DNA of 64,000 bases. Source: Selaginella moellendorffii (lineage: Eukaryota > Plantae > Lycopodiophyta). The notes below the pieces were generated by a model. That model worked only from the letters and a program-made list of their open reading frames with translations, was not told the origin of the DNA and did no database searches. Location: NCBI RefSeq assembly GCF_000143415.4, contig NW_003314316.1, positions 62,001 to 126,000 on the forward strand, written 5' to 3'. Positions 7,855 to 47,840 of the stretch are shown here, piece by piece. Made by a program: the position numbers and the translations under genes. The stretch's first letter is position 1; each line of letters begins with the position of its first letter.

Positions 7855-7997
7855 CACATACAAAGGATGGATCATCTCTTGATAACTTAATAAACAGTTT
7901 TTAAGCGTTTAAACCACCTGATAGGAGGCATGCAGGCTAAAAGCGGCGAATGGTGACCCCTGCCTTGGCCTTGTCCTTGAGAGTCATGGCCCAGACC
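7855..7997 (-). pseudogene. Truncated 3' end of a DUF4419 gene (last ~17 codons plus 3' UTR)
   Basis: Near-identical to 18548-18689 (VWAMTLKDKAKA..VTIRRF*); homology stops abruptly at ~7997. Confidence 0.85.
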
Positions 7998-13316: not shown

Positions 13317-13838
13317 TGTAAATAGTCAAAAAGAACAATTCAAGAAATAATTTATAGAGGTTCAAATATAAAAGTTCAAATATAGAGGTAATGGGCTTAT
13401 AAACAAAAATGCACTTTTTTTTCCAATTGCTTAAGAGTGTTAAAATACTTGGGGTTAAACATCCTTGGGTTTAAGTAATGACCTCCCAAATTCAAGAATT
13501 TCCATTTGGTATTAGAGTGGTCTCAGGTTTGACTTTATTGGTTCACTAGGGGAATCACACCATATGTAAGATTGATATTAGGCAGGTTTAATTTGCCTCT
13601 AGCTATGCTTGAACTAAAGGGTAGGGTGTCAAGAGAGTAGTTTTTAGGAGAATTGCAACTCTCAACTTTCATTTATGAGGGCATAAATTTATAGGGAAGT
13701 ATAATGAATTGCAAATAACTAAAGGGAATAACTTGAAAAACTATTTATTGGGGTTCAAATATAAAAGTAAAGGGCTTATGAACAAGAATGCACTCCCTTT
13801 TTCAATTAGTTAAGGGTCTTGGGATACTTGGGGTTAAG
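13317..13838 (+). mobile_element. Old, decayed Cassandra-type TRIM; 3' LTR truncated
   Basis: Reverse complement of 15575-16167 with heavy C>T/G>A decay; PBS TGGTATTAGAG 13507-13517; second LTR starts at ~13710 and is cut at ~13838. Confidence 0.8.
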
Positions 13839-14079
13839 TTGTGATATATAAATCCTTAAGCCCCAAAGTGGAGCTGAAAAGGTGCCACGTGGTAATGGCC
13901 GAAGCAAAAGCCAAATGAGCGTAACATGTTTGGACTAAAAGCTCCAGTTTGAAAAGTCGAGAGCAGGAGTGAAACTTCCAACGAAATGCTTAAGGAACAA
14001 GCACGAAGCGAGCAATAAGTGAGTCTCTAAAAAAAGGACACAAGAGGACCAACACATGACACGTGGAAGTGTCAAAGTT

Positions 14080-14425
14080 GGAGTCTAAGATAGACTTAAG
14101 ATGGAGTCCAAGATGGATTCGAGATGGAGTTCGAAATGGACCCAAGATGGAGTCCGAGATGGAGTTTGAGATGGACCCGAGATGGAGTCTGAGATGGACC
14201 CGAGATGGAGTCTGAGATGGACCCGAGATGGACCCGAGATGAAGTCCAAGATGGAGTCCAAGATGGACCCGAGATGGAATCTGAGATGGAATCCGAGATG
14301 GACTCGAGATGGAGTCTGAGATGGAACCGAGACCGAGACCGAAACCGAAACCGAGTCCAAGTCCAAGATTGAGACCAAGACTGAGACCGAGTCTAAGACC
14401 GAGACCAAGACCGAGTCCAGTTCCA
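14080..14425. repeat. Degenerate GAGATGGA(G/C)(T/C)CC 12-mer and GAGACC 6-mer tandem array
   Basis: Directly visible periodicity. Confidence 0.9.
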
Positions 14426-15299
14426 AAGAGTTCCAAAAATATAGTAGGGAGAGTGTGGGGGTTGGACCCCAGTGGAGCCAATTTGGCCAGGAAGGACCAG
14501 TTTAGCCCAGGAAGGCCATACTTAATTATTGGGTGATAAAATAACCACTAGGAAGTCCAAGGCTAAAGTGAATATGAACTGACAAGTGAGGTAGCTTGGT
14601 GAAGTGTTCAAAAGCCAACTCTAGCTCCCTCAGGAGATCAAATGGTTGATGCTCCTAATCCAAGCGTAGGTAGCACTACCTACTTGGATACTTGACATGG
14701 CTCAACGGAACCTTGCTCTAAACCCATGGCTAAAGCACCCAAAAGTAGAAGGTGGGGAGAGTACTCATGAGGCTCGTGTAGGGCCACAGTGTTCCGAAAT
14801 GTTGTCCCAAAGTCCCAGACTATGGAAAGGAAGAGGAGTGGTCCTCTGGTGTAGTGACTAAGGATACGGTCATATGGTGAAGAAGTCCTAAAAATCAGTG
14901 GGACTTAATGGTGAGACTTATGGGCTTTGTCCCAGTGGAAGTGTTAGTGAACACGGCTATAGACAAGAAAAGGACTTGGTGGGGACTATAAAAGAAATAT
15001 TGAGGAATGTTATTCCCCATGTCTATGGGTATCTTGAGGATGTTAAGGAATGGATCTAGGATGATCACTCATGGACAGATGGCCCAATCTTTGAGAGACG
15101 AAACTGCGATGTAGGTGGTGTTGAACTATTAGTGTGACCAAAGTGAATGGGCATGGCATTAGTGTAATGGGTTGATATGTCAATAGTACCTTGGGGTGTT
15201 AGTCATGGGATCGGACATGTGTGTAAGGAACTAACTCCCTGAGGTGTCAAAGGCTAAAAGATCCTCGAAAGCACGATCAAAATGATAAAGAATTCATCA

Positions 15300-15500
15300 G
15301 ATGAGACTGAGTCCAAAGTCGAGTCCGAAACTAACTCTAAGACCGAATTCGAGACCGAGTTCGAGATCAAGTCCAAGACCGACTCCAAGACCGAGTTTGT
15401 GACCGAATTTGAGACCAAATCCGAAATTGAGTCCAAGACCGACTCCAAGACCGAGTTTGTGACCGAGTTTGAGACCGAATCCGAAATTGAGTTCGAGACC
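15300..15500. repeat. Degenerate GAGACC/GAGTCC hexamer array with a 60-bp higher-order repeat
   Basis: Lines 15361 and 15421 are near-identical at a 60-bp offset. Confidence 0.85.
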
Positions 15501-15574
15501 CGTGCATGATCTCGTCCGAATTGCAATGATTTATGAGAGCTATGGGGACGTCCATGCTAGATCAATCATACTGT

Positions 15575-16167
15575 TGTAAGCTTCTGAGTTTGGACTTCCC
15601 GGAAGGTCACCCAGCCCAGTACTATTCAAACCCAAGGACGCTTAACCCCAAATATCCCAAGACCCTTAACCGATTGGAAAAGGGGGTGCACTCTTGTTCA
15701 TGGGCCCTTTCCCTCTATATTTGAACCCCATGGATCGTCTCTCGAGTCGTTCCCTTTGGTTGCTTACAATCCACCACGCTTCCCTGCAAGTTCACGCCCT
15801 CGTGAACGGAAGCTGAGAGCTGCAGCTCTCCCGAGAGCCCCGCTCTCTTGACACCCTACCCCTCGGGTCGAGCCCAGTGGGAGCAAACTGGACCAGCCAG
15901 ATGTCAATCAACATGTGGTGCGATTCCCCTAGCCAACCAACAGAGTCGGACCCGAGACCTCTCTGATACCAAATGTAAACTCCTGAGTTTGGACTTCCCG
16001 GAAGGTCACCCAGCCCAGTACTATTCAAACCCAAAGACGCTTAACCCCAAATATCCCAAGACCCTTAACCGATTGGAAAAGGGGGTGCACTCTTGTTCAT
16101 GGGCCCTTTCCCTCTATATTTGAACCCCATGGATCGTCTCTCGAGTCGTTCCCTTTGGTTGCTTACA
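15575..16167 (-). mobile_element. Cassandra-type TRIM (593 bp) with a 5S rRNA-derived segment in both LTRs; young
   Basis: 194-bp LTRs at 15575-15768 and 15974-16167 (3 mismatches); TSD ACTGT; PBS TGGTATCAGAG 15961-15971; purine-rich tract next to 15769; no ORF. Confidence 0.95.
15592..15647 (-). promoter_or_regulatory. 5S rRNA internal control region-like segment (A box/IE/C box) in the LTR; second copy at 15991-16046
   Basis: GGTTAAGCGTCCTTGGGTTTGAATAGTACTGGGCTGGGTGACCTTCCGGGAAGTCC versus plant 5S AGTTAAGCGTGCTTGGGCGAGAGTAGTACTAGGATGGGTGACCTCCTGGGAAGTCC. Confidence 0.9.
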
Positions 16168-18628: not shown

Positions 18629-19919
18629 CTAAAAGCGGCGAATGGTGACCCTTGCCTTGGCCTTGTCCTTGAGAGTCATGGCCCAGACAGCCTTTGGAGC
18701 AATCCCTTTGCTGTCGTCCTCCACAACTTCGTACCCCATATGTCCGGCAAACATGAAAGCCTCGTAAGCTTTCCCGTTGTCGTCCACCTTGACATCCACC
18801 GTGACGTAGCCGGGAGGGATACTGTTGTCCTCGATGACTGGATACTCGAGCTCCACAGCGTCGTTGTAAAAGTCCTTTCGGTAGGACTTTTCATCGCCAT
18901 GCCAGTGTCCATCGCTGTCGAAGACGCAGAAGGCAGAGATCCAGCCGGAGATGTATCGCGGGCCCGATCCTCCTCCAATCCGGTGGCAAATCCTGTTCCA
19001 AAAGTCCGTGTCAGCGTTACCTTTGCTGCTCTCCACGAACTGGGCGGTGATTTTTTTGAGCATGACACGCCACTTCTGGCACTCGCTCCCGTATTTCTCC
19101 AGCTCGTCCACCCTCCGATCGATTTCCTCCCAATCCTCGGTGGTTCCCAGGAGAGTCACGTATGGAATCCCGCAGCAGAGACGAAACCTGGGAGAAGATC
19201 ACCCAAAAAAGTTGCCAGCTTTAAAGACAACAAGAAAATCAATGGAAAATCCACACCCAAAAACCACGAACACCACACCAAACACGTAGAAAACCCATGA
19301 ACTCCATGCATTGCAAGACACTCATCGAAACAAAGAACTTAAAAACACAAATGCAAACGAGAAAAATAAAAACCATGAAGAAAGCTTGCCTGTATTCGAA
19401 GTAGCTCTTGAAGGTGGCCATGAGAACCACACTGCCCACCACCACATCGTTCTTGGTCGTGGTCGAGAAGCTCGGCAAGATCCAGTCGCAAACCTTCTCG
19501 TCCTTGACAGTCTCCTTGAGCGCCACGCTCATCTCCCTCGCCAGGAGCCCATAGTCGCCGCTGTGGAGCGCGGCCTGCTCGGACACAACCAGCTCCTTCT
19601 TTCCCTCGTGATCCACCAAGATGGATCGCAGCGCCTCCGCGTTGCCATTGACGAAGAATCCAAACTGGACAGCGATGGCGAGCCACACATCGTCGGGCCG
19701 GATCACCAGATTGTGATGGAAGCTGTAAGCTTTGATCGCAGCTGCCACAAACCCGTTCTTTTCCGGCAGAAACGCGGTCGCACCGACGCTTGTGCCCTGC
19801 AACACATCGTAGCAGCCCTCCTGCTCGAATTCCATGAATCGCTCCAGGAAATGGGCACTCCCCGCCGGAGATGGCTTCACCTCGGCCGGATCCTTCTTGG
19901 ACACCCTAAATGACACCAT
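18629..19919 (-). CDS. DUF4419-domain protein, intact; exons 19919-19390 and 19187-18629 (GC-AG intron)
   Basis: NGFV..AYSFHHNLVIRPDDVWLAI..QF..VN.NAE.LR..VDHEGKKEL; PSFSTTT..D..V..VVLM..F.SYFEY; spliced junction gives YR-FRLCCGIPYVTLLGTTEDW; GGSGPRYISGWISAF. Confidence 0.88.
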
Positions 19920-20116: not shown

Positions 20117-20300
20117 TTAGCGAAAAAGCACCAGCTTATAGGAGATTGGCCTTCTTGAGCGTGTTCTTATGGCCCAGACGCTCTTTGGAGCATCGTCATC
20201 CTGGGCAATCTCGTATCCCATATGTCCCATCTTGACATCCACAGTGAGGTGGCCATCGGCTAGGGAGGAAAGCTCAGCAATATCGATCTTGTGGTGTTGC
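20117..20300 (-). pseudogene. DUF4419 exon-2 3' fragment with internal deletion
   Basis: GHLTVDVK-MGHMGYEIAQDD-APKSVWAI. Confidence 0.75.
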
Positions 20301-21619
20301 CTGCCCATTCACACAGGATCAGATCGAGCAAGAAGCATTTGCAACTCTCGTTGCGAACGTGGCTTTATGGCCATCAAGGCTCCAGGATTGGAGAGAGGAA
20401 GGCTCAGTATCTTGACGCACTGGAGGTAAGTAGAGTTTTCTATTTTCCAAGATTTGTACATCAGAGGCACGGGAAGCGGGCTGTCTTTGGATAAAGGTTG
20501 AAGTCCTTCGGAAGGACAACTGTTGGGGACAAGAAACCGACTCAAATTTGCAAGGTGTGTTTCCGATTGCTATTTCCATTCTCTGTCATAACTTTTCTTT
20601 GTAGGTGCTGAACGAAATTGTCCAATGGAGTCACAGCTGTGACTGCATGCATCGTTTTTTTGTTCTGTTTTCGTTTTAATATTGATTCACGCAGGTCGTA
20701 GATGTGAGGCCGAAGATCTGCTGCTGATGATGCCCTCCAAAGTTCATGGCAATGGTAAGAACATTGATGTTGCTGCTGGAGAAACTTTTGGAGATGAAAC
20801 AGAGGGACTCGGCACTCTGCCATTCATTGAAGACCAAGGAAGATCAAGCTCAGGGCAGAGGATATCTAAGGCCGGAACATTCTCACCAGCTTCTGGATAA
20901 GAGATTCTTTTTTTCTTCAGCTTAGTCATAAATTAAATATTACTAGACCTAAATAGTTAACATTGTTTATTAATATAATTTCAACTTAAAACCCCCTTGT
21001 TTGACGAGGGTTCTTTGTGATGTACCAACATCGAACACTGATGATGTACCAACATCATCGGACAAAGTGATAGAACTTCCACGGGGTGAGCCTGAGTGAA
21101 AGCAAAGAACTAGCTTCTATACCTCTAAGTAGGTATCCATCTAGCACTACCTGGTCAAAATCCCATTCTAGAACCTGTAATGCAGCAGTGTCTCCAAAAA
21201 TTTATTCAAGAGCCAAACTATTTACGGTTGCAACTAAAGTTTCTGCCTGGTCACTTGTCCCTTAATGTTTGGCACGGCGAAGTTTCAAAACACTTGAGTA
21301 GTGTTTGTAATAGATGAACAAAGTAACAAGAAAATCTACCATACCTTGATACTTTGTCCCCATGAAAGAAGAAACGAAATCGGAACTCCTGTCACTCTTG
21401 CCATTTAATTATAGTTTATACAAACATCAACTTTTCAAGCAATTGTTGAGGCAGATATGCATCCTAACAGAAGAAAATGGAAAATATAACATAAAACCAA
21501 AGTGCAAAGCACATTATCTTTTTGATCCAGGGATTCATGAAGCATGTGAGGAACAACATTTTTTTCAGTCTTTATATATATTATGTTGAATCCAGGGACA
21601 ACATGAAGCTTTCTACTTC

Positions 21620-23099
21620 TTGTAATAAGCTGGTGGAGGTGGCTACGTACTTGTAGTAATAGTAAGGTGGTGGTGGGTATTTGTTGTAGTAATGAGGAGG
21701 TGGTGGAGCCTCGTACTTACTCGTACTTGTAATAAGGAGGAGGTGGCAGGACTTGTACTAGGTAGTGGAGACTCGTATTTGGTGGCGGAGACTCATACTT
21801 AGGCAGTGGATACTTACATGGGAGACTCATACTTGTAATAAGGAGGCAGTGGAGATTTAGTAATATGGAGGGGGTGGTGACGATTCATACTTGTATGGTG
21901 GCGGTGGTGGACTCTCATACTTGTATGGTGGCAGCGGTGGTGACTCATACTTGTATGGTGGTGGAGGCGGCGACTCATACTTGTATGATGGCGGCGGTGG
22001 CGACTGATACTTGTATGGGGGCGGTGGTGGCGACTCATACTTGTATGGCGGCGGTGGTGGACTCTCATACTTGTATGGTGGCGGCGGTGGTGACTCATAC
22101 TTGTATGGCGGTGGTGGTGGACTCTCATGGTGGTGACTCATACTTGTATGGTGGCGGAGGCGGCGACTGATACTTGTATGGGGGCGGTGGTGGTGGCTCA
22201 TACTTGTATGGCGGCGGCGGTGGACTCTCATACTTGTATGGTGGCGGCAGTGGTGACTCATACTTGTATGGTGGCGGAGGCGGCGACTCATACTTGTATG
22301 GCGGCGGCGGTGGACTCTCATACTTGTATGGTGGCGGAGGTGGCGACTCATACTTGTATGGGGGCGGTGGTGGCGACTCATACTTGTATGGCGGCGGTGG
22401 TGGACTCTCATACTTGTATGGTGGCGGCGGTGGTGACTGATACTTGTATGGTGGCGGAGGCGGCGACTCATACTTGTATGGCGGTGGCGGTGGACTCTCA
22501 TACTTGTATGGTGGCGGAGGTGGCGACTCATACTTGTATGGGGGCGGTGGTGGCGACTCATACTTGTATGGCGGCGGTGGTGGACTCTCATACTTGTATG
22601 GTGGCGGCGGTGGTGACTGATACTTGTATGGTGGCGGAGGCGGCGACTCATACTTGTATGGCGGTGGCGGTGGACTCTCATACTTGTATGGTGGCGGCGG
22701 TGGTGACTCATACTTGTATGGAGGGGGTGGTGGCGACTCATACTTGTATGGCGGTGGTGGTGGACTCTCATACTTGTATGGTGGCGGAGGCGGCGACTCA
22801 TACTTGTATGGTGGCGATGGTGGCGACTCATACTTGTAAGGAGGCGATTCATACTTGTAGTATGGTGGTGGTGGGGATTTGTAGTAGTAGTATGGTGGTG
22901 GAGGGGAAACATACTTGTAGTATGGCGGTGCAGGGGATTCATACTTGTAATAAGAGGGAGGTGGAGGTGACAAATATTTGTAGTAGGGAGTGAAGTCTGG
23001 CATTGGAGGGAAGGAGAAATCAAATGCCTGAACCTGGCTGCTTTTCAACAGGACAAGAGCAGCAGCCAGCAGGGCCATTGCAAAATGGCAGCTGCCCAT
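21620..23099 (-). CDS. Extensin (signal peptide plus SPPPPPYKYE repeats); frame closes at 22125 after an in-repeat deletion, and degenerate repeats continue to ~21620
   Basis: MGSCHFAMALLAAALVLLKSSQVQA signal peptide; 30-bp repeat array; TGA at 22125-22127; repeats resume in another frame. Confidence 0.9.
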
Positions 23100-23621
23100 C
23101 CTCTACCTATCAAAATCCCTTGGATTTCCTTCTTTCCAATCTATTCAAGCCTTCTTTCCAATCTATTCAAGCCTAGCTCCAAAGCCCTCAAGTTGTCGTT
23201 CCCGTCTCTTCTTTCCCTTTTTCTGCCCTTTTGTGTGCTTGGAGCTCGAGCTTTTAAAGCACTCTTGAGAGAAAAAGAGGAGATCGGGTCAACTGCGAGA
23301 AAAGATCAACACGTCCTAAACCCATATTTACAGGCCGTTTCCTTAGAGATGATATAAGGCTGCACTAAGCACAGTTGAACAAGCCAAAACGTTGGCAGCT
23401 TGTCAACAAAAACACACAAAGAAGACTTCAGCGTTTGCCTGGAAACGTCAATTTTTTTTTGATTCTTAGAAAGAGGAAGGATTCCTTGCTACAGCTTTGG
23501 CTGAATTTTTCTCCAGATCTAACCTTGATATGGCATAGAACACCACAATAAAATCCCATTGACAAACACACCAACACACAAACACTATTTTGTCGCTGAT
23601 GAAACTGATCGCCTTTGAATC

Positions 23622-24446
23622 GGTCTGACTCAAGCTTTGATCATCAGAAGGAACGTGTCTTCTAAAGTCACAGGAAAAAGAAAAAAAAGAGATTAGCCAC
23701 TGATAAGAAAAACGTAAGAGCTCACCTTGATCCCTGCAGGTTTCCACGAGTTAAAAGAAATCACCATGGCTGGGCTTTTGTCCCTGAGAGACATGACCCA
23801 GACAGCCTTTGCTTTGTTGTCGGCCTCCACAACTTTGTATACCTTATGTCCCGCAAACATGAAAGCCTTGTAAGGTTTCCTGTTATCATCCACCTTGACA
23901 TCCACCGTGAGAAGTCTTTCGATCGCCATGCCTTTTTATATCTCTGCGAAGACACAGAAGAAAGAGATCCAACCGGAGATGTATCGCGGCCCCGATCCTC
24001 CTCCCAGGTGGTGACAAATCCCGTTGTTCTCATTCTGTAAAAACTGACACGGACCTCTGGAACAGGATTTGGCATCACCTGGGAGGAGGATCGGGTCCAC
24101 GATACATCTCCAGCTGGATCTCTTTCTTCGACAGCGATGGAAAGTGGCGTGACGATCAACGGAGCTGTGGATGTCGAGTATCCGCTCATTGACGATAGCC
24201 GCATTTCTCCCGGTACCTCACGGTGGATGTCAAGGTGGACAACAATGGGAAACTTACGAGGCTTTCATGTTTACAGGACACATGGGATAAGTCCAGACAT
24301 GGATTCTTTTAGCTCCGTGAAAACCTGCAAGCTTTGGGGTGAGCTTTTACGATTTTTCTCATCAGTGACTGTGGCTAGTCTCTTTCTTTCTTTTCCTTTC
24401 CTCGGCTGCGACTTTGGCTTTTGGTGATCAAAGCTTGAGTCAGGCC
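23622..24446. repeat. Inverted duplication of DUF4419 exon 2 plus 3' flank (arms ~23622-24023 and ~24060-24446)
   Basis: Left arm encodes ..HHLGGGSGPRYISGWISFF..TVDVKVDDN on the minus strand; right arm encodes the same on the plus strand; TGATCAAAGCTTGAGTCAG is mirrored at the outer ends. Confidence 0.85.
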
Positions 24447-24469
24447 CGACGATCATTGCGAGTTTCAGG

Positions 24470-25045
24470 TGTTTGAAAAGCGAGCTTCCTCAGCAGAGAT
24501 GGAAAACTATTCAAGTGGAGGTGTATATGTGGTGTGGAGGCTACGGAACTCCTCCTTGTTTCTTGGAATCGGGAGGCCTCTCCACGAACTGCGCAGATGA
24601 GCATGACGTTACAATTTTCAGCTCGTCCTCTCGGATCGATTTCCTTCATGGCCCGAGAAAGGAAAGTTTACAAAGAAAAAGAGACAAATCCATGTAGCTC
24701 TTGAAAGTGGCCGTGAGAATACGCTCCCAACGATCACATCGTTCGCATAGTCGGTGCTGTGGAGCACCGCCACTGGGACAATGGAGAAAAACCAGATCCT
24801 TCTTGCCCCGTGAACAAAACTCGATTGCAGCTCCTCGGCGCCATTGAAACAATCCAAGCTGGACAGCTATGGATTTGTCTATGGCAGCCATTCGTGTGCG
24901 TCGATGCTGGTGCCCTGCACTTTCTCCTGGAAATTCTTTTAATTCTTCATACCTCCTCCTCTCGTTGAAATGAATCAGGGAGATTTCAAGAGCCTTGACC
25001 TCATAAATTTCATAATATCGAGTCGATGGATCACCTTTGCTCAAT
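24470..25045 (-). pseudogene. Degenerate DUF4419 copy (exon 1 remnants and exon 2 start)
   Basis: IAVQLG..NGAEELQS.FVHG; ALHSTDY; NDVIVGSV; ATFKSY; EIDPR..; multiple frameshifts. Confidence 0.75.
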
Positions 25046-25456
25046 CCTTTTGTCGTCCTTGTAAACTGTTAGTACTGCCACTCCATCTTCGCAGTATCAT
25101 GTCATCTCTTCTCAATCTTTTCAGCAGACAAAATTACCTATTATTGTCAAAGAGGTAAAACGAAGAGAACCAACCGAAAGTGTTTGAACCAAATTTCAAA
25201 AATAAATGAAAGAAGCACAGTCCGTCCTGGCACGGAGTTTTGGATTAAGATTTTAATCGCTATGGAGGGGGATGCAATAATCTCATATGATCTGAATTTC
25301 AGATAAATTTTAGGCAAGCTAAAAGCAGGGCCCATAATCACAAAATGACAAACGCATCTAACTGGATGGGCATGTTCACACAAAAGAACTTACCACAGCA
25401 AAGGAGTACAAGCAACTTAGAGATCAACCAGTCCGGAAAATAACTATATAAAACGT

Positions 25457-25866
25457 CTATAATCGAGGGATCTTGGGCTTCTTGAGTGTGTTCTTGAGAG
25501 TCATGGGCCAGACACTCTTTGGAGCAATCCCTTTCTCATCATCCTGGGCGATCACGTATCCCATATGTCCCGCAAATATGAAAGCCTCATAAGTTCTCCC
25601 ATTGTCGTTCACCTTGACATCCACCGTAAGGTACCCAGGAGCATACTGCTGCCCAAAACACACGGATACTCTCCCACAGTGTCATTGCTCCTGTTCCTGT
25701 AATCGAAGTGGCCGGTCTCACCAGTCCCTGTCCACGTTACCTTTGCTGCTCTCCATGAACTGGGCGGTGATCTTCTTGAGCATGACGTGCCACTTTTTGC
25801 AATTTTCGCCATACTTGTCCAGCTCGTCCACTCTCCGATCGATTTCCTCCCAATCCTTGGTTGTTC
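25457..25866 (-). pseudogene. DUF4419 exon 2, 3' part, separated from its 5' part (36967-37607) by the Gypsy insertion
   Basis: TTKDWEEIDRRVDELDKYGENCKKWHVMLKKIT..; YLTVDVKVNDNGRTYEAFIFAGHMGY; joins ...TLLG(T) at 36967 through TSD TGTTC. Confidence 0.9.
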
Positions 25867-26240
25867 TGAAGAGGTGTGAAAACTCCTCTTCACTGGAAAT
25901 CTATTGTTAGTAAGAAAATAAAAGAGAAAAAGGCCCGATCTCCAAGGGCTGAGAAGAAGCATGAGTAAAAGAATGTTATGTATTGATAAAAAAAATGATG
26001 GAATGGAGATAAAGATCCACAATTTGGATTCCCCCTTTTGAAAGGCTAGCAGTTCTAATTGCTAGCATATACTATATGTTGTGCATGATTTAATCTATGG
26101 CTCCGATGCAACCCTAGGTTCAAAGTTGGAGTCCCCTGAGCCTGGGTTTTTGGTTGATACACTCTGTTCCCCTGATAGAACTAGACACCATCCTCAGTGT
26201 GAACATAGTCAGTCTCCATCACTTGTTGCTGCTGCTCTAG

Positions 26241-28864
26241 TCAATAGAGGTGACATTTTTGCTGTGGGAGTGTAAGCTCGTGGTTGGGGACACTGTCTGG
26301 TGGATCTGTCCCATCTTCTTGGAGGTTGGCTACCTCAGCCAGGAGGGCGGTATGATCATCCTCAAGTTTCCGGTAGTGGGTGTTGAGCTCTTCGTATTTG
26401 AATTTGTAGGTGAATTTGTGAGCTGCTGATGGGGTTGATGGCTGCTTGGAGACGATCTTCCTGATACCGGAGGTCAATGTGGATCTGCTTCATCTCTTCG
26501 AGCTGAGTATCCAGCCGGTGGTTTAAAAGCTCATAGAATTCCTTCTTGATCGCTCCCTAGGTGTATATGAAGGAGTCTTGCTTGAGAAGATGCTGTGCGA
26601 TCTTGGCTGGTGTTGGGAAGTAGTTTGCTTGCTCGCGGTGCATACGTTGATCGAGGGCTTCAAACAACTTGCGGGTGCAGTAGCTTAGGTCGCGAAGTTT
26701 ATCTTTGTACTCCTTCCTAATCTTGTCGTAATCACGGCGTACCTGACTTTGTGGCTGAGTCATGGCTGCTGCTCCTGCTCCTGCTCCGTGATCCTGGTGT
26801 TTCTCGCTAGGGTTCACTGTGTTCTTGATCCGAGAGTTGAAGTTGCTGGAGGCTGAATCTGCTTCGTTGGATGTGGGTGACGTGGTCGGGCCGGATTCTT
26901 TGAGGTGGTTGGAGATGAGCTTTTCAGTTTGATGGTGGATGAACGGCCCAGATGTGGCGCTGAAATTAATTTATCCGTTGGGAAATTTTTCACTTGGAAT
27001 TTTGTTGAAGGGGCGGAATTTTTGTGAATGCTGGTTGTGGTATTTGCTGGAGGAGGCATGGTTGCGTGTTCTTCAAGTGATTGGCGAAGGTAGTCAATGT
27101 TTTCTTTTGTGGAACATGTTGAGGAGGTCGGGGCGTTGAGAATGTTGTTCTCAGCTGGTGGAGAAATTGAGTTCTGGGCGAGTAGTTGACGTTTTCCTTT
27201 GGCGATGTTGATGTGTTTGTGAGAAGTTGTCGGTTTTGGGGCTGATTCGAGTGGATGTGGGCTCTGGGGTGAGTGTGGATGGTGGTGTGAGTTGTCTTCA
27301 TTGTTGCTGATGACGAGGTGTTCTCGGATCAGCGGTTTTGGAGCTGGATTCGCTGGCGTTTTGCGTGTGAGGCGGCGGTGAAGTGGAGTTGAATTGTTGG
27401 AGTGTTTGTTGCTAGAGCTGGTGTTGTTGGAGTGAGTTGAGCCTGATGTAAGCTCCTGAGTTTGGACTTCCCGGGAGGTCACCCAACCCAGTACTATTCA
27501 CACCCAAGGACGCTTAACCCTAAATATCCCAAGACCCTTAACCGTTTGGAAAAGGGGGTGCACTCTTGTTCATAGGCCCTTTCCCTTTATATTTGAATCC
27601 CTATGGATTGTCTCTCGAGTCGTTCCCTTTGGTTATTTACAATCCACCACGCTTCCTTATAAGTTCACGCCCTCGTGAACGGAAGTTGAGAGCCGCAGCT
27701 CTCCCGAGAGCCCCGCTCTCTTGACACCCTACCCCTCGGGTCGAGCCCTTATAAGTTCACGCCCTCGTGAACGGAAGTTGAGAGCCGCAGCTCTCCCGAG
27801 AGCCCCGCTCTCTTGACACCCTACCCCTCGGGTCGAGCCCAGCGGGAGCAAACTGGACCAGCCAGATGTCAATCAACATGTGGTGCGATTCCCCTAGCCA
27901 ACCAACAAAGTCGGACCCGAGACCGCTCCAATACCAAATGTAAGCTCCTGAGTTTGGACTTCCCGGGAGGTCATCCAGCCCAGTACTATTCAAACCCAAG
28001 GACGCTTAACTCCAACTATCCCAAGACCCTTAACCGATTGGAAAAGGGGGTGCACTCTTGTTCATAGGCCCTTTCCCTCTATATTTGAATCCCTATGGAT
28101 CGTCTCTCGAGTCATTCCCTTTAGTTACTTACACCTGATTGTTGAGATGCTGGCTTCGGTTTCTTGCTGGGAGTTGCTCCTTCTGATTCTGAGTGTTCTT
28201 CGGAGCTGTCACTTTGTTCTATGGAGTTCGTTTGGGTTGTCCACAGTTGTTTGTTGGGAAGAGTTTGGTGTAGAGCGATCAGCAGTGGGAATATTACTGT
28301 CCGCATGGTCTTCTTGTTGAGTGTGGCAAGGATGGCATGGTCGAGAAGCTTGAGAAGGAGCTCATGGAGATGATGAGCCACATTCACACATTTGTCGTCG
28401 AGTAGAGCTCCGTAGACTTCTGTTGTGCGCTTGCTGATGGTGCGATCTGTTGGGCGAAGTTCATTGTAGAGGAGGAGGGCTTTGAGGCAATCCATATGCT
28501 GCTCCTCGATGTCCTCCCATGTGAGCTCACTGGTAATTTCTCGATTGGCCTTGATGATTTGCCGTGGAACTTCTCCTGAAAATTTGAGTAGTCCCTTGTT
28601 GGAGATTTTGAAAACGGAGGTGATTCTTGCTGGATTGAGGGTGATCTCGTTGGTGCTGTCGGTTATGGTGCTGTTCTTGGGGTTGAAGGAGGCGGCCAGC
28701 TTCCTCGCCAGTTTTTGGTCTAGGTGTGTTGAAAAGGCGTTGTGGAGGAGCTCAAATCCATGGTCCTTGAGCCAGGTGGTTGTGTTGTTGCTGGGAAGCC
28801 TAGGAATATGGTGTATGACATATCTAAGGCACCGGGGTGGATGAGCTGGCATCTTTCTCTTCAT
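26241..28864 (-). pseudogene. 3' extra ORF of the Gypsy element (Athila env-like/plant transposon protein-like N-terminus, low-complexity linker, coiled-coil tail), interrupted by Cassandra
   Basis: 28864-28134 joins in frame to 27441-26814 once the TRIM and one TSD are removed (452 aa); further helical frames at 26817-26241. Confidence 0.7.
27447..28133 (-). mobile_element. Cassandra-type TRIM (687 bp) nested in the Gypsy element, with a 92-bp internal tandem duplication
   Basis: 195-bp LTRs at 27447-27641 and 27939-28133; TSD CCTGA; PBS TGGTATTGGAGC; 5S-like segment in both LTRs; duplicated unit starts at 27656 and 27748. Confidence 0.95.
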
Positions 28865-29015
28865 TTTCTGCGATTGAAGTGCTCACCCTGTTAGGGTTCT
28901 TGAAACCTGTATGCGGCGCTCGATTGCTGGTGATGAACGGTCGAGATTTGTTGACGGAATTGATGTGGTTTGATTTGGCTTGATTGCAAATCAATGGTGG
29001 ATATTGGTGATAAAG

Positions 29016-32000
29016 TTAACTCAAGTTCAACTGTTGATATTTGCTTAGGTGGCATTGATCCAATGGTAGCTTGGGACTTAAGAGATTTTTGCTGCTGTTT
29101 GTTGCTGAAGTTGGTGGATGAGTTCGTGTTGAGTCAAGTTGAGTTGTGTCAAACTGATTTGAGTTAAATTTTGTCAGCTTGTTGAGGTTGACGATCTTAG
29201 TGAAGTCTTCAGTGAGTGTGCTGACTTTGGCGGTGCCACTGGGGTATAGTTTAATGATTTTGAAAGGTCCTTGCCAGTTGGTGTGGAGTTTTCGACCAAG
29301 TTTGCTAATGGGTCCTCGGTACCAGAGAACATGATCGTTGATGCTGTATTTGGGAATGTTATGCCGGGATGCTTGTCGGTCGTGCCAAGCTTTTCTCTGT
29401 TTTTGGATGGCGTGAAGTGTCCAGAGGGCATTGAGTCGGATTTCGTCGAGATGTTCGAGTTGCTGAAGCCTTTCTCGAACTGCATTTCGGGTGTCAAGAT
29501 TATACTTGACGGTGACTCGCATGCTTGGGACGATGAATTCGATTGGTGTGATGGCTTCTGTTCTGAAGGCGAGTTTGAATGGCATCATGTCGGTGGTGAC
29601 TTTATACACAGTTCTATAGGCCCAAAGTACATCGAGAAGTTTGTTGTCCCAATCTTTGCCGGAATCGTTGATGACTTTTTTGAGGATGGTCTTCAGTGTT
29701 TTGTTCGTTGCTTCTGCTTGACCGTTGCCTTGAGGATAGTATGGTGTTGATGTTTTGTGTCAGATTTTGAACTCGGTGGCGAGATGTTCGATTGTTTCGT
29801 TGATGAAGTGGGTGCCTCTGTCAGTGACGAGTTCAAGTGGTGTGCCGAAATGAGTGATGATATTTTCATAGATGAAGGTTGCTGTTGCTTTCGCTGTGGC
29901 ATGTCGGAGAGGTATTGCTTTGGCCCACTTGGTAGTGTAATTGGTGGCGACAATGATGCACTGATTTCGTCGATAGGTGCTGACTTGGGGTCCGATGAAG
30001 TCGAGTCCCCATTTCTGAAATGGTGCCATTGGGAATGTTGGGTTGAGTTGTTGAGTCTGAGTTTTTGGCAGTAATCGATGTCTTTGATATGTGTCGCAGC
30101 ATTTGCAGAATTCTTCAGTGTCATGCCAGAGTGTCAGCCACCAGAGGCCGGCTTGAAGAATCTTCCAAGTTGTGGTGTCAGCAGCAAAGTGTCCGCTGGA
30201 AAGTCCATTGTGAGCTTCCTTGATGATTTGAGTTGTGCTTGGCGGCTTGATGCATCGGCGAAGAATGTTGTCAATTCCTAGTTTGTAGAGAGTGCCTCCG
30301 ATGACTAAGTATTGTCGGGTTTTAGCAACAAAAGTCTTCTTTTGGTCGGATGTAGTGTACTGATCTGGAATTTTTGCTGAGTTCAGGTAACTGAAGACGT
30401 TGTCAGGTTGCTGGTATTGAAACTCGGAATAGGTTTGAGTCAGGTAAGTCGTTGGTAAGTCTTTCGAGTTTGTCGCCGGTGGTGATCCGACTAAGATAAT
30501 CTGCTTGCTCGTGATTTTTGCCGGGTTTGTGGACAATCTCAAAGTTGTATTCTTGTAGTAAAAGGAACCATCTTGATATTCGACCAGATAGTATCGGCTT
30601 GTTGATGAGGTAAAGGAGTGCCTTGTGGTCGACGAAAATTACAACTTTGGTTGACAGTATGTAGTGTCGGAACTTCTGAAGTGAGTAGATCATGCCGAGA
30701 GCTTCTTTCTTGGTGGTGGTGTAATTTCGTTCAGCTGGGTTGAGTAGTCAGCTGGCGTAGTAGATCGGTTGATCTCGGTTGTCATGTTGAGTTTGGCTCA
30801 GAATTGCACCAGTGGCGACGTCGGAAGTGTCGACATGAATGTGGAACTCTTGTGTCTAGTCGGGCTTGGCAAGGATCGGTGTTGTTGCTTGTTTGAGTTG
30901 GAGATTGTCGAATTCTTGTTGAATTCTTGTTGCTGTTTGGACGTCCATGTCCATTGGGTATCTTGTTTCAGTCCATCGGTGAGTGGTTTGGTGATATGAG
31001 CATACTTGTGAATGAATCGTCGGTGATATCTGACTTTGCCGAGGAAGCGCCGAAGTTCTTTCTGATTCTTCGGCGGTTCGAGTTTGGAGATGACGTCAAC
31101 TTTGTCCTTGTCGACGAGAATGCCGTCATTGCAGATAACGTGGCTGAGAAGTACTCCAGATTTGACAAAGAAAGCTCATTTGTTGGGGTTGAGTGCTATG
31201 TTGTTCTCCTCACACTTGTTGAGGCATTTCTCCAGGCATTCAAGATGTCGATCTTCCAAGCTGAAAATGCTGAGGTCGTCCATAAAGACTCTTATAAAGT
31301 CAGTGAGGTAGTCTCAAAAAGTGTTAGTGACGAGCCTTTGGAAGGTGAATGGGGCGTTGTAGAGTCCAAAAGGCATTCGTCGATAAGCATAGGCTCCCTA
31401 TGGACTGATGAATGCTGTCTTGTGCTGATCTTCTTCGGTGATGTGAATTTGGTTGTAGCCGGAGAAACCATCAAGGAAGGAGTACATCTCGTGTCCGGCG
31501 ACTGCGTCAAGAACTTCGTCGGTAAATGGTATCGGGAAGACATTTTTTTCGGTGGCGTCATTGAGCTGTTTATAGTTGACACAGATTCGAAGTTTGCCAT
31601 TTTTCTTCGGCACAACCACCAGTGGTGAAAGCCATATCGGATTCTGAATCGGGTAGATGTACTCGACTTGGAGAAGCTTGTCGAGTTCTTTCTTTACTTG
31701 TTCCATCAGATTCGGATTCATCCAGTAGGCTGCTTGTCTTCTTGGTTTTGAGTCTAGAAGAAGGGTGATGGTGTGAAGGCTGAGTTTTGGTGAAACTCCC
31801 TTAAGGTCTCGATAACTCCAAGCGAACAAGTGTTTCTTCTTTCGGAGAAGATTGATGGCTTTGTCTCAAAAACTTGCTCTGAGATGTCAGTGGCAAGTAC
31901 AATGTAGTGTTCGTTGCCGTCGTCGGCAAGGCTGACTTTTTTGAGTTTTTGGTCGGCTGGAATTGACGGAATGTAGGCAACTTTGTTGTGGTTGTCCACT

Positions 32001-35000
32001 GTGAATGCCGGTGGCGCTTCGAGTTTTGTATCTCGAGTGACTGGATTTTTCAGTGCTGATGTAATCGGGGGGTCATTCTCGTTGGAAGTCAGCGATAATT
32101 TGGAAGAGATCGATCTCGGCCAAAGGTTCGAGATCAGGGTAGGCTTTGAGAATTTGTTGTTCTTCATAGTCGTCGAGGCCATCTTCGAGATTATATTCTT
32201 CCAAGTCAATAGGTCGGTTGTGGCTGGACAGCAATTTGGTCGCTTTTGTCAACACGGTTGTCGGTCCGTTTGGTCCTCGAAGGATAAGATTGTCATTGGG
32301 CCAGTCTTGATAAACTTGGGCAGTTTGAAGCCAAGGTCGACCGAGGAGAATCAAGTATCCGTCGGTCTGCTTCAGTAGTTTGAGGATGACATAGTTGACT
32401 GGTATTTTGATGCCTTGAATGGTGGTGTTGACTTTTCGAATGATGCCTTTGGGTTGAACAGATTGGTGGTCGGCCATTCGGACATTGAAAGGTGCTGGTT
32501 GGACTAGGCTGATGTTGAGTTGTTGAACAAGACTTTCTTCAATAATATTAACGCTGGAGCCGCCGTCAATTATGGCTCCTCGAACAAGGTGTTTGTCCAG
32601 TCGTAGGTTGATTGTCGGAACATCATTGTCACAATCGCCTGGTTGAATCTCGGCTCGAAATGTGTCAACATCTGTCTGTATCGAGTTGAGTGTGGGTGAG
32701 TCTGTCAAAGTGTTGGTCGGTGCAGATGTCAGATCAGTGAGCTGTTTGGTGAGGTAGGGTGCAATCTTCAACAGTTGGCCGATGGTGATTTGAATATTTC
32801 GGTTGAGGATAGTCTCTGCTACTTCTTGGATTTTGTCGAAGTTTGCCAAATTGTGTTCTGGTGTCGGTGTCGATGTTGGACGATTTGTCTGTCGGTTTTC
32901 TGGTATTGAGTCTTGGCATTGTTGCCGAGCTGGTGATGGTTGAGCTTCATTGTCAGAGTCTAAAATCACTAATTCGGGTGGTTGTAGAGCGAGTTGCCAT
33001 TGTATCTTGGCAGCTAACTTCTGCTTCTTTTTCCATTCCTAGAGTTTTGTTGGGCTCTCAGGGCCTTTCTCTTCACTATCTGCGGAATCTCTGTCTGGTT
33101 GTTGTTGTTTTTCTGCTCAAATTTGTGCTCGAGTTTGTACTGCCATGACTTGAGGATCTAAGTCATCATTGTTGGCATAAGGTAGTTCATCAGTCTCGAC
33201 CATCCTTGTTGTTGGTGGTTGCTGCTAGTTCTGATCTTGTTGTCGAGGAGGCGGCGGACCAAGTCTTGGCGGACTGCCCTAGTTTTGAAGTCGAGGTTGC
33301 CATGGTCGGTTGTTGTAGTTGCCTTGGTAGGCCTGGTCTTGATAACCTTGGCCTTGGTATCTTTGGTTCTGGTATCTTGGGTATTGTTGGTATCCTTGGT
33401 TGTAGTTGTCTTGGTTTGCTGGGTAGTTCCGGTTTGGCAGGTGTTGTCGATCGTTGTAATTGTTGTTGTAGTCGTTGTTGTAATTGTTGTAGTTGTTGTA
33501 GCGAGGTTGATCATTCCATTGTTGACTCTGGTGTTGGAAGTTGTTTCTCGGCGGTCTCCAGTTTGTCGGAGGTTGTGCCTGGTAATTGTCGAAGTATTGA
33601 TTTGGATATGGTTGTCGAAACTGCTGTCGGGGATAGTTCAAGACTTGTCGAACTTCTGGAGAATTTCGAAATCTGCAAGTCTTGGCATCATGACCTTCTT
33701 TGGTACAGATCTGGCATTTGGAGATTTGGAGCTTGCAGTCACTTGCCGGATGTCCTTCGTTCTTGCACTTAGTACACCAAATTCCAGATTGAAATTCTTT
33801 GATGTCGGCCTTGGCTTTTCCCTTGAGCTTGTCAATTGTTTTCCTAAGTTTCCGAAGTTTTGACTTGGTGCTCTCTCCGAGTTCATCGTCGGAGTTGTCG
33901 TCGGAACTGCTATCAGAATCTGAGTTATCCGTGTCATCTACTTGTGCTGTCATTCGTCGAGCTTGAACATCTTGAAGGGCTCTTGCGAGTTTGAGATAAG
34001 TGGCAACGTTGATGTGTGTTGCCGCTTCTCGGAGGGATCGTCGAAGGCCTTGCATGTACCATTGGTAAAGTAATGTTTCGGTGGCATTGTTGCCGCATTT
34101 GCTAGCATGTCGAGTGAAGGTTTGAGTGTAGTCATCTATGGATTGACCAAACTTCTGCTTGAGTTTTTGGATCTTGTGAAGTCATTGGCTTTGAGTGAGG
34201 GAACACTTGAATCGGTCTACAAGCTTGAGTGTGAGGTCGTCGAAACTTGTATTTTGAGGAAGTGTTTGAGCCCATTCGTTGGCTCTCTTTCGAAGGGTAC
34301 ATCGGAAGTAGTATGGAAGTTCGGTCGTCTGGCTGTTAATTCAGATTGCTTCTCGAAACTGTTCAACATGTTTCTCGGCATCTTTTGACTTCAGACCATG
34401 AAATAGTGGATAGGAGACATGTCTTCCGACAGGTATGTTGGCAACGGTAGTAGTGACTGCCATTTGCTGTTGGTAGTAATGTTGGTATTGTCGAGGTTGT
34501 TTTGTCAGGTTGTCACCGTGGAGTCCTAAGGTGATTTGTAGCAAGGGGTTGTTGGGGTTGATGGCAAAGTTGGTGTAAGAGGAAGGTGGTGAATTGTTGT
34601 TGTTATTTAGTGGACTCTTCTCTGTTTTTTCTTCTGTATTAGGACTGTTTTCGGGTGTGTCATCGATGTCGTCGTCGGTGTCGGGTTGCTTGCCGGTGTT
34701 GATTTTCGGAAGATGGTGCTCGAACTTGTTGTCGACATACTTGTTGGAGTTATGTTGTGTTGGTTGTGGTTGTTCGTCTAAATTGTCAAACAGTTCTTCA
34801 AACGTATAATTGTGTGGTGACTGTGGTTGCTGTGGAAGATTGTTGTCGTTGACGATTGGTTCGTCGATCTCGTTGTTGTTGGATGATTGTAGCTGTTTGG
34901 CAGCTTGGTGTGAGTTGTTGACGTCGAGTGCTTGACTATTGGACGATTTGAGTTGTTTGTCTTTACTGCTGTTGACTGGGTATATCGGAGTGCGACTGTA

Positions 35001-35360
35001 ATTGGTGAAGTCAAGTTGTTGTCTCATCGGCGCGTTGAAGTCGAAAGCGTGTTCGAAAGGTCTTGCTGATAGCAGGCTTCGGTAGATGTTGGAAGCAAAT
35101 GTGGGATATATTGGTGTTGTGAAGATCGGTCGGTATGGCGAAAACGGTGCTGGTCTGGTGAAGTCTGTGAAGCTGGGCAGGAAACTTGGTTGTTCGTCAT
35201 CACTGTAGATGGGGTTGGTGAATATACCTTTGAAGTGGTTGTATGCTGCTTGAAAAATGTTTTGTTGCTCGGGAGTAGTCTGTGTCGACTGCTCGAATGT
35301 TCGGTCGGGCTCGGGCACTCTGGTGGGTGCCGTCAAGGGTGTTGATTCAGGCTTGGGCAC
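29016..35360 (-). pseudogene. gag-pol of the non-chromovirus Gypsy element (Gag with two CCHC knuckles, PR, RT, RH, INT), with stops and frameshifts
   Basis: CTKCKNEGHPASDC and CQICTKEGHDAKTC; AIIDGGSSVN; RT 31829-31000; RH ALGMIYSLQKFRHYIL; INT H..GHF, C..C, FQKWGLDFIGP, VTDRGTHF; WQGPF. Confidence 0.93.
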
Positions 35361-35653
35361 TTCGGTGGGTGCCGTCGAGGGTGCTGCTGGTGGTGTGTCT
35401 GGTGGTGTTGTGTAGTTGTCATATTCTTCGCAGATGTCTGATACTGGTTCGTCGGAGTTAGCTCACGGTAATAATTCGTGTCAGATGTAATTCTCTCTCT
35501 TGGAGGGTCTAACAATTTAATTCAACTTCTCTTGGTCTTTCTTTCTCTTTGTTTCTAAATTCTTCAAATCTCTATCTAAACGTCGGATAAGCCGTTATCG
35601 GTCTTCTTCCGACTTGCTGGATGTTCTTTGTGGTTTTGGATACATGCATTCTT

Positions 35654-36676
35654 CTACTGGTTGTCGGTGTTAGATTCATGTCTGCAGTCAATCATGCAAT
35701 TCGGGCAGAACTTCAGGAAGACTGTTGGCGGGCCAATTGTCAATAAAGTCATTGTGAGCTTGTTTTTTCTTTTCAGTGCAAATATTGACGGTGGTGCATG
35801 TTGGGTTGGGTTGTGTTCAGCTGAGTTGTGTTGGGTCGAGTGTGCTGGTGCAGTATGCAGACTGGTCTTCCACTTGCTGGTGCCAAGATGGAGTTCGATG
35901 AAGAGTTTCGGATATTTGGGTTTGTCTGGAATGATTTCTTCGATAATGTCGTCGAGTTGTTCGAGTCTGGATTGGGTGATGGCGTGATTGGCGAGAGTTG
36001 TTGCAGCGAACGTGTTGATTTTGAACCGAGTTCGGACTGTTGTTTCGGGTTGTCGAAAAATCGGTGGTGCATTGTCAAGTTGTCCCTCGACGAGTTCTCC
36101 AATACCGGGTAATAGAGTGATAGGTTCGTCATTGGTGTAGGTTCTGAGGATGTGCTTCGGTATTTGGAATGGGCACAGGAATTGGAATTGTGTTGGAGTG
36201 CTAGGATTGCTAGGTCGACGACTGCACGGAAGATGGGTTTGTTTCGGTAGTGGTGTCGGTTTGTGTCGAGGGTGCTGGTTGATGTCTCGAGCTTGGAGTG
36301 GGTGGTCTTGTGCTTGGAGATGGAGTTCACCAATGAAGCTGTTGAAGGCGTCTGCTGATGAAGGTGCTGGTAGATTGGAGTTTCTTGTCAAAGAGGGCTG
36401 TTAGTGGTCTTCGTTGGTGATTGGACTTGGAGATCTTGAGAGAGAGCTTTCAGATTCTTCAAAGATCTCCTCTGGGAAGCGTCTGCCTCTACTGCGTTGG
36501 ACGGCGACTGCTTGGACACCATTGATCCATGTTGGTGGTGGCATTTGCTTGTTGAATTTGGGCGAATTGGGTAGCGAATTTTGGCGAGTTGGGTAGATTG
36601 CTTGATCATTCTTGCTATCTGCGCACAAAGAATGGAGAAAGAATAGAAGAATTTGTGAACCTAAAGGGGAATTCAA
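35654..36676 (-). CDS. Extra ORF(s) between PBS and gag, unknown function
   Basis: 245-aa open frame 36391-35654 with a globular-looking core and a CPNC..C.H tail; shorter frame 36676-36401. Confidence 0.45.
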
Positions 36677-36966
36677 AAGTTGTGGTCGCCAAATGAAGAG
36701 GTGTGAAAACTCCTCTTTGCTGGAAATCTATTGTTAGTAAAAAAACAAAAGAGAAAAGAGCCTGATCTCCAATGGCTGAGAAGAAGCATGAGTAAAAGAA
36801 TGTTGTGTATTAATAAAAAAAATGATGGAATGGAGATAGGGATCCACAATTTGGATTCCCCCTTTTGAAAGGCATACTATATGCTGTGCATGATTTAATT
36901 TATGGCTCCAATGCAGCTTTAGGTTCAAAGTCAGAGTCCTCTGAGCTTAGGTTTTTGGTTGATACA

Positions 36967-37607
36967 TGTTCCCAGAAGAGTCATGAAAGGGATCCCACAC
37001 ATTAGACGAAAGCTGGTAAAAAGATCATGAACAAGATCTTAGAAGATGATGTTGAGCACTAAATCATGTAGAAAAACAATTATCAAACACACTATGGTGC
37101 AAAAGTAGCCACAAGCTTGAAAGCATCCAGGAAAAAATCCACTTATGTGTATTCGAAGTAGCTCTTGAAGGTGGCCATGAGAACCACACTGCCCACCACC
37201 ACATCATAGAAGCTCGGCAAGATCCAGTCAGACCTTCTCGTCCTTGATATAATTCTTGAGCTCCACGCTCATCTCCCTCCCCAGGAGCCCATAGTCGGCG
37301 CTGTGGAGCGCGGCCGCCTGGGACACAACCAGCTCCTTCTTGCCCTTGTGATCAACAAAGATCGATTGCAGTGCCTCGGCGTTGCCATTGATGAAGGATC
37401 CAAACTGGACGGCGATGGCGAGCCACAGATTATGGTGGTCACTGTAAGCTCTGATGGCGCACGCCACAAAGCCATTCTTCGCTGGATGGAAGGCACTCGC
37501 ATCGACGCTAGTGCCTTAGCGGCCCTCCCCCTGAATTCCTCCAAGAAATGGCCGCTCTTGGGCTGGGATTTCGGCAGCTTGGACGGCTCATTCTTAAACG
37601 TCACCAT
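36967..37607 (-). pseudogene. DUF4419 pseudogene, 5' part (exon 1 frameshifted, donor mutated, start of exon 2)
   Basis: MVTF..GHFLEEF; AIRAYSDHHNLWLAIAVQF; donor reads AC/ATAAGT; exon 2 FRLMCGIPFMTLLG ends at the TSD. Confidence 0.88.
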
Positions 37608-44220: not shown

Positions 44221-44238
44221 TGGGATCAAAGCTTTCCA

Positions 44239-47800: not shown

Positions 47801-47840
47801 ATCGTGAGGAGGAATCGAAATTTCGATCGATCCTTGCGAT

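Follow-up and report, generated by a model that had tools for sequence, protein, structure and literature searches.

Does the long inverted repeat in the DUF4419 gene cluster of Selaginella moellendorffii serve to silence the very genes it resembles, or is it what a rearrangement of the cluster has left behind? The repeat occupies positions 23622-24446 of the stretch of DNA analysed here, which is 64,000 nucleotides long and is referred to below as the window. According to the original prediction it is a candidate hairpin-RNA or proto-miRNA regulator of its own gene cluster, which upon read-through transcription would yield small RNAs silencing the whole family.

The geometry of the repeat was determined using a repeat search in combination with a gapped alignment of the two arms in gene sense. 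The repeat search recovered an inner arm pair at 23957-24025 and 24061-24129 (69 nt, 90% complementary with 7 mismatches, 35 nt apart) and four further collinear paired blocks beyond it, the outermost at 23622-23650 and 24418-24446, where the last 29 nt of the arms are again 90% complementary. In the alignment, 294 of 341 columns match and 47 are mismatched, corresponding to 86% identity; some 15 indels separate the arms, among them losses of about 55 nt from the left arm and about 70 nt from the right, each at a different place. Two arms of about 400 bp around a spacer of about 35 bp, as originally described, are thereby confirmed, and the term head-to-head is correct, since the gene-5' ends of the two arms face each other. 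The outer ends are less well defined, with weak homology that fades gradually at about 23600 and 24470. The parts of the repeat are as follows.

23600-24025, minus strand: left arm, distal half of DUF4419 exon 2 (about residues 241-357) and about 160 nt of 3' flank
24026-24042: centre of the repeat, about 10-17 nt without match to either arm
24043-24470, plus strand: right arm, inverted copy of the same exon 2 segment and 3' flank
23950-24136 (187 nt): inner hairpin, a stem of about 70 bp (23957-24025 / 24061-24129) around a loop

Taken together, the arms represent exon 2 from about residue 235 to 357 of a 362-aa protein and, beyond it, a non-coding flank of about 140-160 nt. The coding homology of the left arm, 23762-24025, is oriented like the cluster's genes and is damaged by one stop, one frameshift and the deletion of about 55 nt, while the right arm carries at least three frameshifts, two stops and the deletion of about 70 nt. 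The 35-nt spacer (24026-24060) is itself partly DUF4419 sequence, as 24043-24060 encodes residues 235-240, retained in the right arm only. Folding of 23622-24446, a check proposed along with the prediction, returned one long hairpin on either strand, with energies of -440.2 and -446.8 kcal/mol against about -244 kcal/mol for shuffled sequences (z = -24.9 and -25.9). The inner 187 nt fold at -120 kcal/mol (plus) and -128 kcal/mol (minus), with z of about -15, and are the sole portion of the repeat small enough to resemble a MIRNA foldback.

To place the repeat within the cluster, we mapped the DUF4419 content of the window by tblastn and sensitive blastn with the window's own genes, querying exons singly and translating broken copies piecewise. 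The resulting map comprises two intact genes (A and B), a third copy split by a retrotransposon (C), a decayed copy (E) and assorted debris.

7854-7996, minus strand: stray fragment 10.6 kb away from gene A, whose final codons and 3' flank it copies (88.7% over 150 nt)
18632-19919, minus strand: gene A (LOC112350897), intact DUF4419, exon 2 at 18632-19189 and exon 1 at 19389-19919
20141-20281, minus strand: stray C-terminal exon 2 fragment, nearest to copy C (76%)
24619-24645, minus strand: proximal exon 2 relic of E, from similarity to the window's own genes (tblastn, sensitive blastn)
24656-24694, minus strand: intron relic of E, from similarity to the window's own genes
24689-24919, minus strand: exon 1 relic of E, from the same similarity, riddled with deletions
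25080-25183, minus strand: DUF4419 exon 2 debris, corresponding to the very stretch absent from copy C
25208-25273, plus strand: DUF4419 exon 2 debris, 66 nt, blastn E = 2e-7 against gene B
25469-25866 and 36967-37607, minus strand: copy C, third DUF4419 copy, exon 2 split by the retrotransposon
25867-36966, minus strand: LTR retrotransposon of 11.1 kb, Ty3/gypsy-type, with TG..CA ends and a 5-bp target-site duplication
37777-39020, minus strand: gene B (LOC112350899), intact DUF4419

The repeat sits within E, a decayed minus-strand DUF4419 pseudogene, and forms its 3' part. The relics of E at 24619-24919 begin directly past the outer end of the right arm, i.e. upstream of the repeat on the minus strand, and run in the sense of the left arm; the inverted copy of distal exon 2 and 3' flank occupies the place of part of E's proximal exon 2. 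The 5' end and start region of E were not recognisable in tblastn or blastn comparisons with the window's genes. Because relics of the same dead gene adjoin it, the repeat is not a free-standing intergenic element, and the map bears out that it is an inverted duplication of part of a gene with intact paralogues in the same cluster. The right arm is not, as had been stated, the only plus-strand DUF4419 sequence in the window: a plus-sense piece of 66 nt lies at 25208-25273, and in its translation the motif that immediately precedes GGGSGP can still be recognised. This piece and the minus-strand debris at 25080-25183 are adjacent exon 2 pieces in opposite orientation, which shows that the array has undergone local inversion repeatedly. 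Copy C has in addition lost about 100 nt of exon 2 through an internal deletion, and the LTRs of the element that splits it (25867-26161 and 36694-36966) are 8.2% diverged. Rearrangement is thus rife in the DUF4419 cluster, as seen from the second inverted piece, the split copy C and the stray fragments.

Elsewhere in the window, inverted repeats are found at 6704-7603 and at 13374-16129. One of these loci is AT-rich, with 106-nt arms at 91%, and the other has arms of 90-104 nt at 77-88% that lie 1.8-2.5 kb apart. Judged by eye, the 3' flank of gene A resembles part of the first locus in an AT-rich motif, which hints at a small repeated element. Besides the DUF4419 sequences, the following genes and elements were identified, which suit a lycophyte genome.

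1902-5512, plus strand: second gypsy-type element
22125-23099, minus strand: extensin gene (324 aa), in which a signal-peptide-like N-terminus precedes about 25 proline-rich repeat units
39610-40671, minus strand: NPH3-family gene
42334-49583, both strands: four long PPR-repeat ORFs in a GC-rich stretch (56-60% GC)

The exact extensin ORF was absent from the protein collection in an exact look-up, and degenerate extra extensin repeat DNA is present downstream of the gene at 21612-21858.

Genes A and B reside on the same S. moellendorffii scaffold of 1,343,795 bp, as does a third intact paralogue, D (LOC112350932), outside the window; the protein of gene B is identical to XP_024543689 over residues 1-360 of 365. 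Among the states that the arms share with only one of A and B in 172 well-aligned columns, 16 are those of A and 4 those of B, which puts the arms on the A side of the family. At the protein level they are slightly nearer to D than to A, the first piece of the right arm agreeing with D at 31 of 40 residues and with A at 28 of 40. A quick tree of 46 proteins unites the Selaginella DUF4419 proteins in one clade with the topology (B,(A,D)), to which Adiantum ferns, two proteins from run assemblies and chytrid fungi are nearest, followed by oomycetes. Springtail and fungus gnat proteins occur among the best 120 matches to the family, and no named seed-plant or bryophyte protein was found among them. 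This patchy, fungus- and oomycete-like distribution may reflect one or more old horizontal transfers, into early vascular plants. Each of the three intact genes also has a copy of about 97.5% identity elsewhere, those of A and D on a scaffold of 1,266,795 bp and that of B on one of 564,560 bp. Such copies fit two assembled haplotypes, and an allelic copy of the repeat region probably exists. DUF4419 is a domain without known function: a PDB sequence search and Pfam gave no clue, no solved structure being related by sequence, and the literature searched contains just two incidental mentions, neither with plants in the title. The labels effector and defence gene cluster, which accompanied the original prediction, are therefore unsupported.

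If the hairpin had been kept for its pairing, this should be visible in how the arms have diverged. The comparison involves only 47 mismatches in one sequence, and the statistical power of the following tests is accordingly limited. The mismatches are spread evenly along the alignment, with 1-7 per 31-column block (permutation p = 0.75). The inner 69-nt stem and the remainder have equal mismatch rates (Fisher p = 0.55), and so do the non-coding outer third (12.8%) and the coding part (14.5%; p = 0.75). The longest perfect run between the arms, 23 nt, is within chance expectation (P = 0.71). The idea of a specially conserved inner stem was rejected on the Fisher and permutation tests. Site by site, arm pairing is also unrelated to conservation between A and B (Fisher p = 1.0). 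The best-paired parts of the repeat had been described as the coding motifs most conserved in the intact genes; the two do coincide by eye, but no statistical link exists between them (p = 0.55, 0.75 and 1.0). On codon positions 1, 2 and 3, the arm mismatches number 9, 6 and 14, compared to 5, 5 and 16 between the intact genes A and B.

Selection for structure on one transcript strand should make the G:U-tolerated transitions of that strand dominate. Such transitions number 18 if the plus strand is the one transcribed and 15 if it is the minus strand (p = 0.73), so neither strand is favoured. Polarisation of the 172 columns with A and B assigns about 14 changes to the left arm alone and about 11 to the right arm alone, with a different change in each arm at 3 sites. 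Shared-derived sites, which give an upper bound for compensated pairs, number only 2, against 29 that are mismatched and uncompensated; the search for compensatory substitutions between the arms, suggested as a check of the prediction, hence speaks against it. The distance between the left and right arms (0.169) is as large as that between A and the left arm (0.163) and exceeds that between A and the right arm (0.128). This indicates that the duplication took place close after the split from the A/D lineage, and that no gene conversion or homogenisation has kept the arms alike.

An internal control is provided by the exon 1 relic of E, which is not palindromic. At sites where A and B agree, it differs at 13.6%, compared to 12.3% for the left arm (p = 0.87) and 9.6% for the right arm (p = 0.31). 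With arm rates equal to that of the relic and the pairing tests null, the arms appear to decay like the rest of the dead gene. Their divergence (Jukes-Cantor, JC, 0.152, or about 14-15%) exceeds that between the two neighbouring LTRs (0.087) by a factor of about 1.7, and the repeat is thus older than the LTR insertion, provided that both evolve neutrally. The original prediction was to fall if arm divergence proved random with respect to pairing and neither transcription nor small RNAs were found. The half of this that is accessible here has come out against it: arm divergence is random in this respect, and nothing indicates that the structure is maintained or used.

The capacity of the repeat to silence has to be considered separately from its maintenance. 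About a quarter of the 21-mers in the arms have at most 3 mismatches to gene A (106 of 423 in the left arm, 103 of 408 in the right), and 49 and 45, respectively, do so to gene B. Matches with 0-2 mismatches to gene A fall at 23785-23912, 23962-24006, 24044-24148 and 24212-24280, and those to gene B at 23842-23913 and 24208-24277, along with one window at 23963-23983. Identical 21-mers to both genes derive from one block and its partner in the other arm.

23882-23913, minus strand: TVDVKVD-motif stretch of the left arm, with 21-mers identical to A and B; partner within 24208-24280

The stretches matched by arm 21-mers, and thus possible targets, lie within 18670-19014 in gene A (at most 2 mismatches) and at 37884-37962 and 38092-38112 in gene B. 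Near-complementary stretches of small-RNA length to the target mRNAs, as expected of a silencer acting in trans, are hence present for both genes, while maintained pairing or target match was not detected (2 against 29 sites; rate equal to that of the exon 1 relic). The silencing capacity of the arms, as predicted from pairing and target match, is real.

With respect to established small-RNA classes, MIRNA foldbacks have an upper size limit of about 300 nt and no secondary stems in the duplex region. The whole repeat, at 825-870 nt, exceeds this size, and the inner sub-hairpin of 187 nt would pass only if excised by itself. The MIRNA guidelines of Axtell & Meyers (10.1101/213314) call for a duplex of 20-24 nt with at most 5 mismatched positions, of which at most 3 in asymmetric bulges, and for at least 75% of reads to be miRNA, miRNA* or 1-nt variants in at least two independent sRNA-seq libraries. 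By structure alone the inner stem conforms to the duplex rule, having 7 mismatches in 69 nt, and 47 arm windows of 21 nt pair with at most 2 mismatches and no indel. Extended intramolecular double-stranded RNA, the mark of hpRNA loci, is likewise predicted (-440/-447 kcal/mol, z of about -25; 86% over 341 columns). A scan of the whole window with Rfam 15 at gathering thresholds gave no match to any miRNA family. In a permissive scan the best match was MIR2646, with 62.4 bits against a gathering score of 245, followed by animal mir families at 19-29 bits; these sub-threshold matches are generic long-hairpin matches. The 78-aa ORF of the left arm is absent from the protein collection (exact look-up), which provides no hint of an annotated transcript. 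Finally, the features of rearranged pseudogenes, i.e. a broken frame and unconstrained substitutions, are displayed by the repeat wherever tested.

How, then, do the conceivable explanations compare? A hairpin silencer of its own family would require that the repeat is transcribed as one RNA, folded and diced into 21-nt siRNAs or an emerging miRNA that cleave the mRNAs of A, B and D. Either strand gives a stable long hairpin that contains the inner 187 nt with a stem of about 70 bp, the arms match their targets well, with perfect 21-mers in the TVDVKVD segment, and the host pseudogene provides an upstream gene relic on the minus strand. Orthologues of DCL1, DCL3 and DCL4 have been reported for S. 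moellendorffii, with lycophytes lacking DCL2 (PMC5569507), and target homology far beyond one duplex is the hallmark of the inverted-duplication model (Allen et al. 2004, cited in 10.1101/213314). A minus-strand transcript could in principle start from the relic of E, or from the 3' LTR 1.4 kb upstream, and would then run through right arm, loop and left arm towards the extensin gene. However, the native promoter is doubtful, as the 5' end and start region of E are unrecognisable, about 15 indels cut the stem into blocks, and pairing and target match bear no sign of selection. Moreover, Rfam yields no match at gathering thresholds (MIR2646 reaching 62 bits of the 245 needed), and the window contains three other inverted-repeat loci, so that structures of this type are common in the region. 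We thus consider a silencer of this kind unlikely, and silencing activity of any sort, be it incidental or functional, equally so; that the repeat is a meaningful regulator appears quite improbable. In its specific form, with a hairpin still transcribed from the E relic or the 3' LTR and 21-nt siRNAs from the inner stem and TVDVKVD block cleaving the DUF4419 paralogues, the proposal is very doubtful. If true, it would provide an instance, in a lycophyte, of a gene family that harbours a hairpin silencer of itself. An active locus would also rank among the rare silencers documented outside seed plants that arose from the family they target, and would show how much decay such a locus tolerates while still working.

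Alternatively, the repeat might act not on the DUF4419 genes but in cis, through siRNA-directed DNA methylation of the extensin promoter or as cruciform or fragile DNA. The left arm ends at about 23600, some 520 bp upstream of the extensin start codon (23099), and the argument is purely positional. An obvious 24-nt small-RNA peak was absent from both Selaginella species sampled (PMC5569507), which makes methylation through 24-nt siRNAs less plausible, and the neutral decay of the arms speaks against maintenance; a cis effect is hence highly unlikely. A foldback, MITE or Pack-type transposable element with a captured gene fragment, the arms being its terminal inverted repeats, would agree with the 90% complementarity of the outermost 29 nt and with a region rich in transposons. 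Nearly all of both arms is gene-derived, however, and the arms follow the order of the gene whose relic adjoins them; the ends at 23600 and 24470 are fuzzy rather than sharp, no target-site duplication is obvious to the eye in the flanks, and the non-coding outer part has no second copy within the window. This hardly tenable reading was rejected. Artefactual palindromes do occur in assemblies, but fold-backs that arise during assembly or cloning derive from one molecule and have near-identical arms. Here, 14% of aligned sites and about 15 indels distinguish the arms, with 55- and 70-nt deletions in different arms, a divergence far too large for a chimeric palindrome, and this next to negligible explanation was likewise discarded.

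Based on the combined evidence, we propose, with a probability of roughly 0.7, that a fold-back duplication inactivated one member of the tandem DUF4419 array and that the feature is its neutrally evolving remnant. In the minus-strand copy E, the distal half of exon 2 together with the 3' flank would have been copied, inverted, immediately upstream of itself, possibly through a double-strand break with fold-back priming or a replication template switch. The inverted copy likely replaced part of proximal exon 2, leaving gene E dead, and both arms would then have decayed, like the rest of E, by unconstrained substitutions and indels. What remains should still fold into a long imperfect hairpin, from which Dicer-like enzymes, were it read through, could cut siRNAs, some of them matching the intact paralogues. 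Counter to the relic interpretation, a stem of about 70 bp with 7 mismatches survives, and some 21-mers are identical to A and B. Neutral evolution is compatible with small-RNA production, and young hpRNA and proto-miRNA loci are expected to drift. Since no selection on pairing or target match is detectable, small-RNA output, if any, would most likely be incidental rather than that of a maintained regulator.

How does the repeat relate to known systems? Arabidopsis MIR161 and MIR163 are examples of young MIRNA genes born by inverted duplication of target genes. The model of Allen et al. 2004, cited in 10.1101/213314, places the origin of new MIRNA loci in such duplications. The gene-derived inverted duplication and the 21-mers nearly identical to A and B give the present repeat the architecture of this founder-gene route to hpRNA and MIRNA loci, with which it shares target homology well beyond a 21-nt duplex, the head-to-head arrangement, the short loop, nearby paralogues and some matching 21-mers. 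Unlike young MIRNA genes, which have precisely excised and sequenced miRNA/miRNA* pairs, it is known here from DNA, its fold-back of 825-870 nt is far longer, and its arms are old (14% diverged, with many indels) and unconstrained.

Endogenous long inverted-repeat (hpRNA or IR-siRNA) loci are exemplified by IR71 and IR2039 of Arabidopsis. Common to these loci and ours is a long gene-derived inverted repeat, giving several hundred bp of double-stranded RNA without an RNA-dependent RNA polymerase. They are known from abundant siRNAs, however, whereas here the structure of the DNA is at hand, and the double-stranded RNA of the present repeat would be interrupted by a mismatch every 7 nt on average and by large bulges. 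Another such locus is an inverted repeat derived from SRK, which is a source of siRNAs in certain ecotypes of Arabidopsis (Lu et al. 2006, cited in 10.1101/213314).

The kind of feature described here is thus already known; this instance is new, and from its sequence unremarkable. It illustrates, as a caution, that a striking gene-derived plant hairpin can arise as a side effect when a tandem array is rearranged. Internal controls, namely the rate in the non-palindromic part of the same pseudogene, polarised substitutions and G:U strand asymmetry, separate the ability to make small RNAs from being maintained to do so, even without expression data. Fold-back inverted duplications from break repair or template switching are known among pseudogene fragments in tandem arrays. 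Like such fragments, the repeat is part of a defunct gene copy and is broken by stops, frameshifts and deletions; it changes at the rate of the adjacent non-palindromic pseudogene sequence and adjoins scrambled fragments and a transposon-split copy. It is with these rearranged pseudogene fragments of tandem arrays, from which it differs in no essential respect, that we class it.
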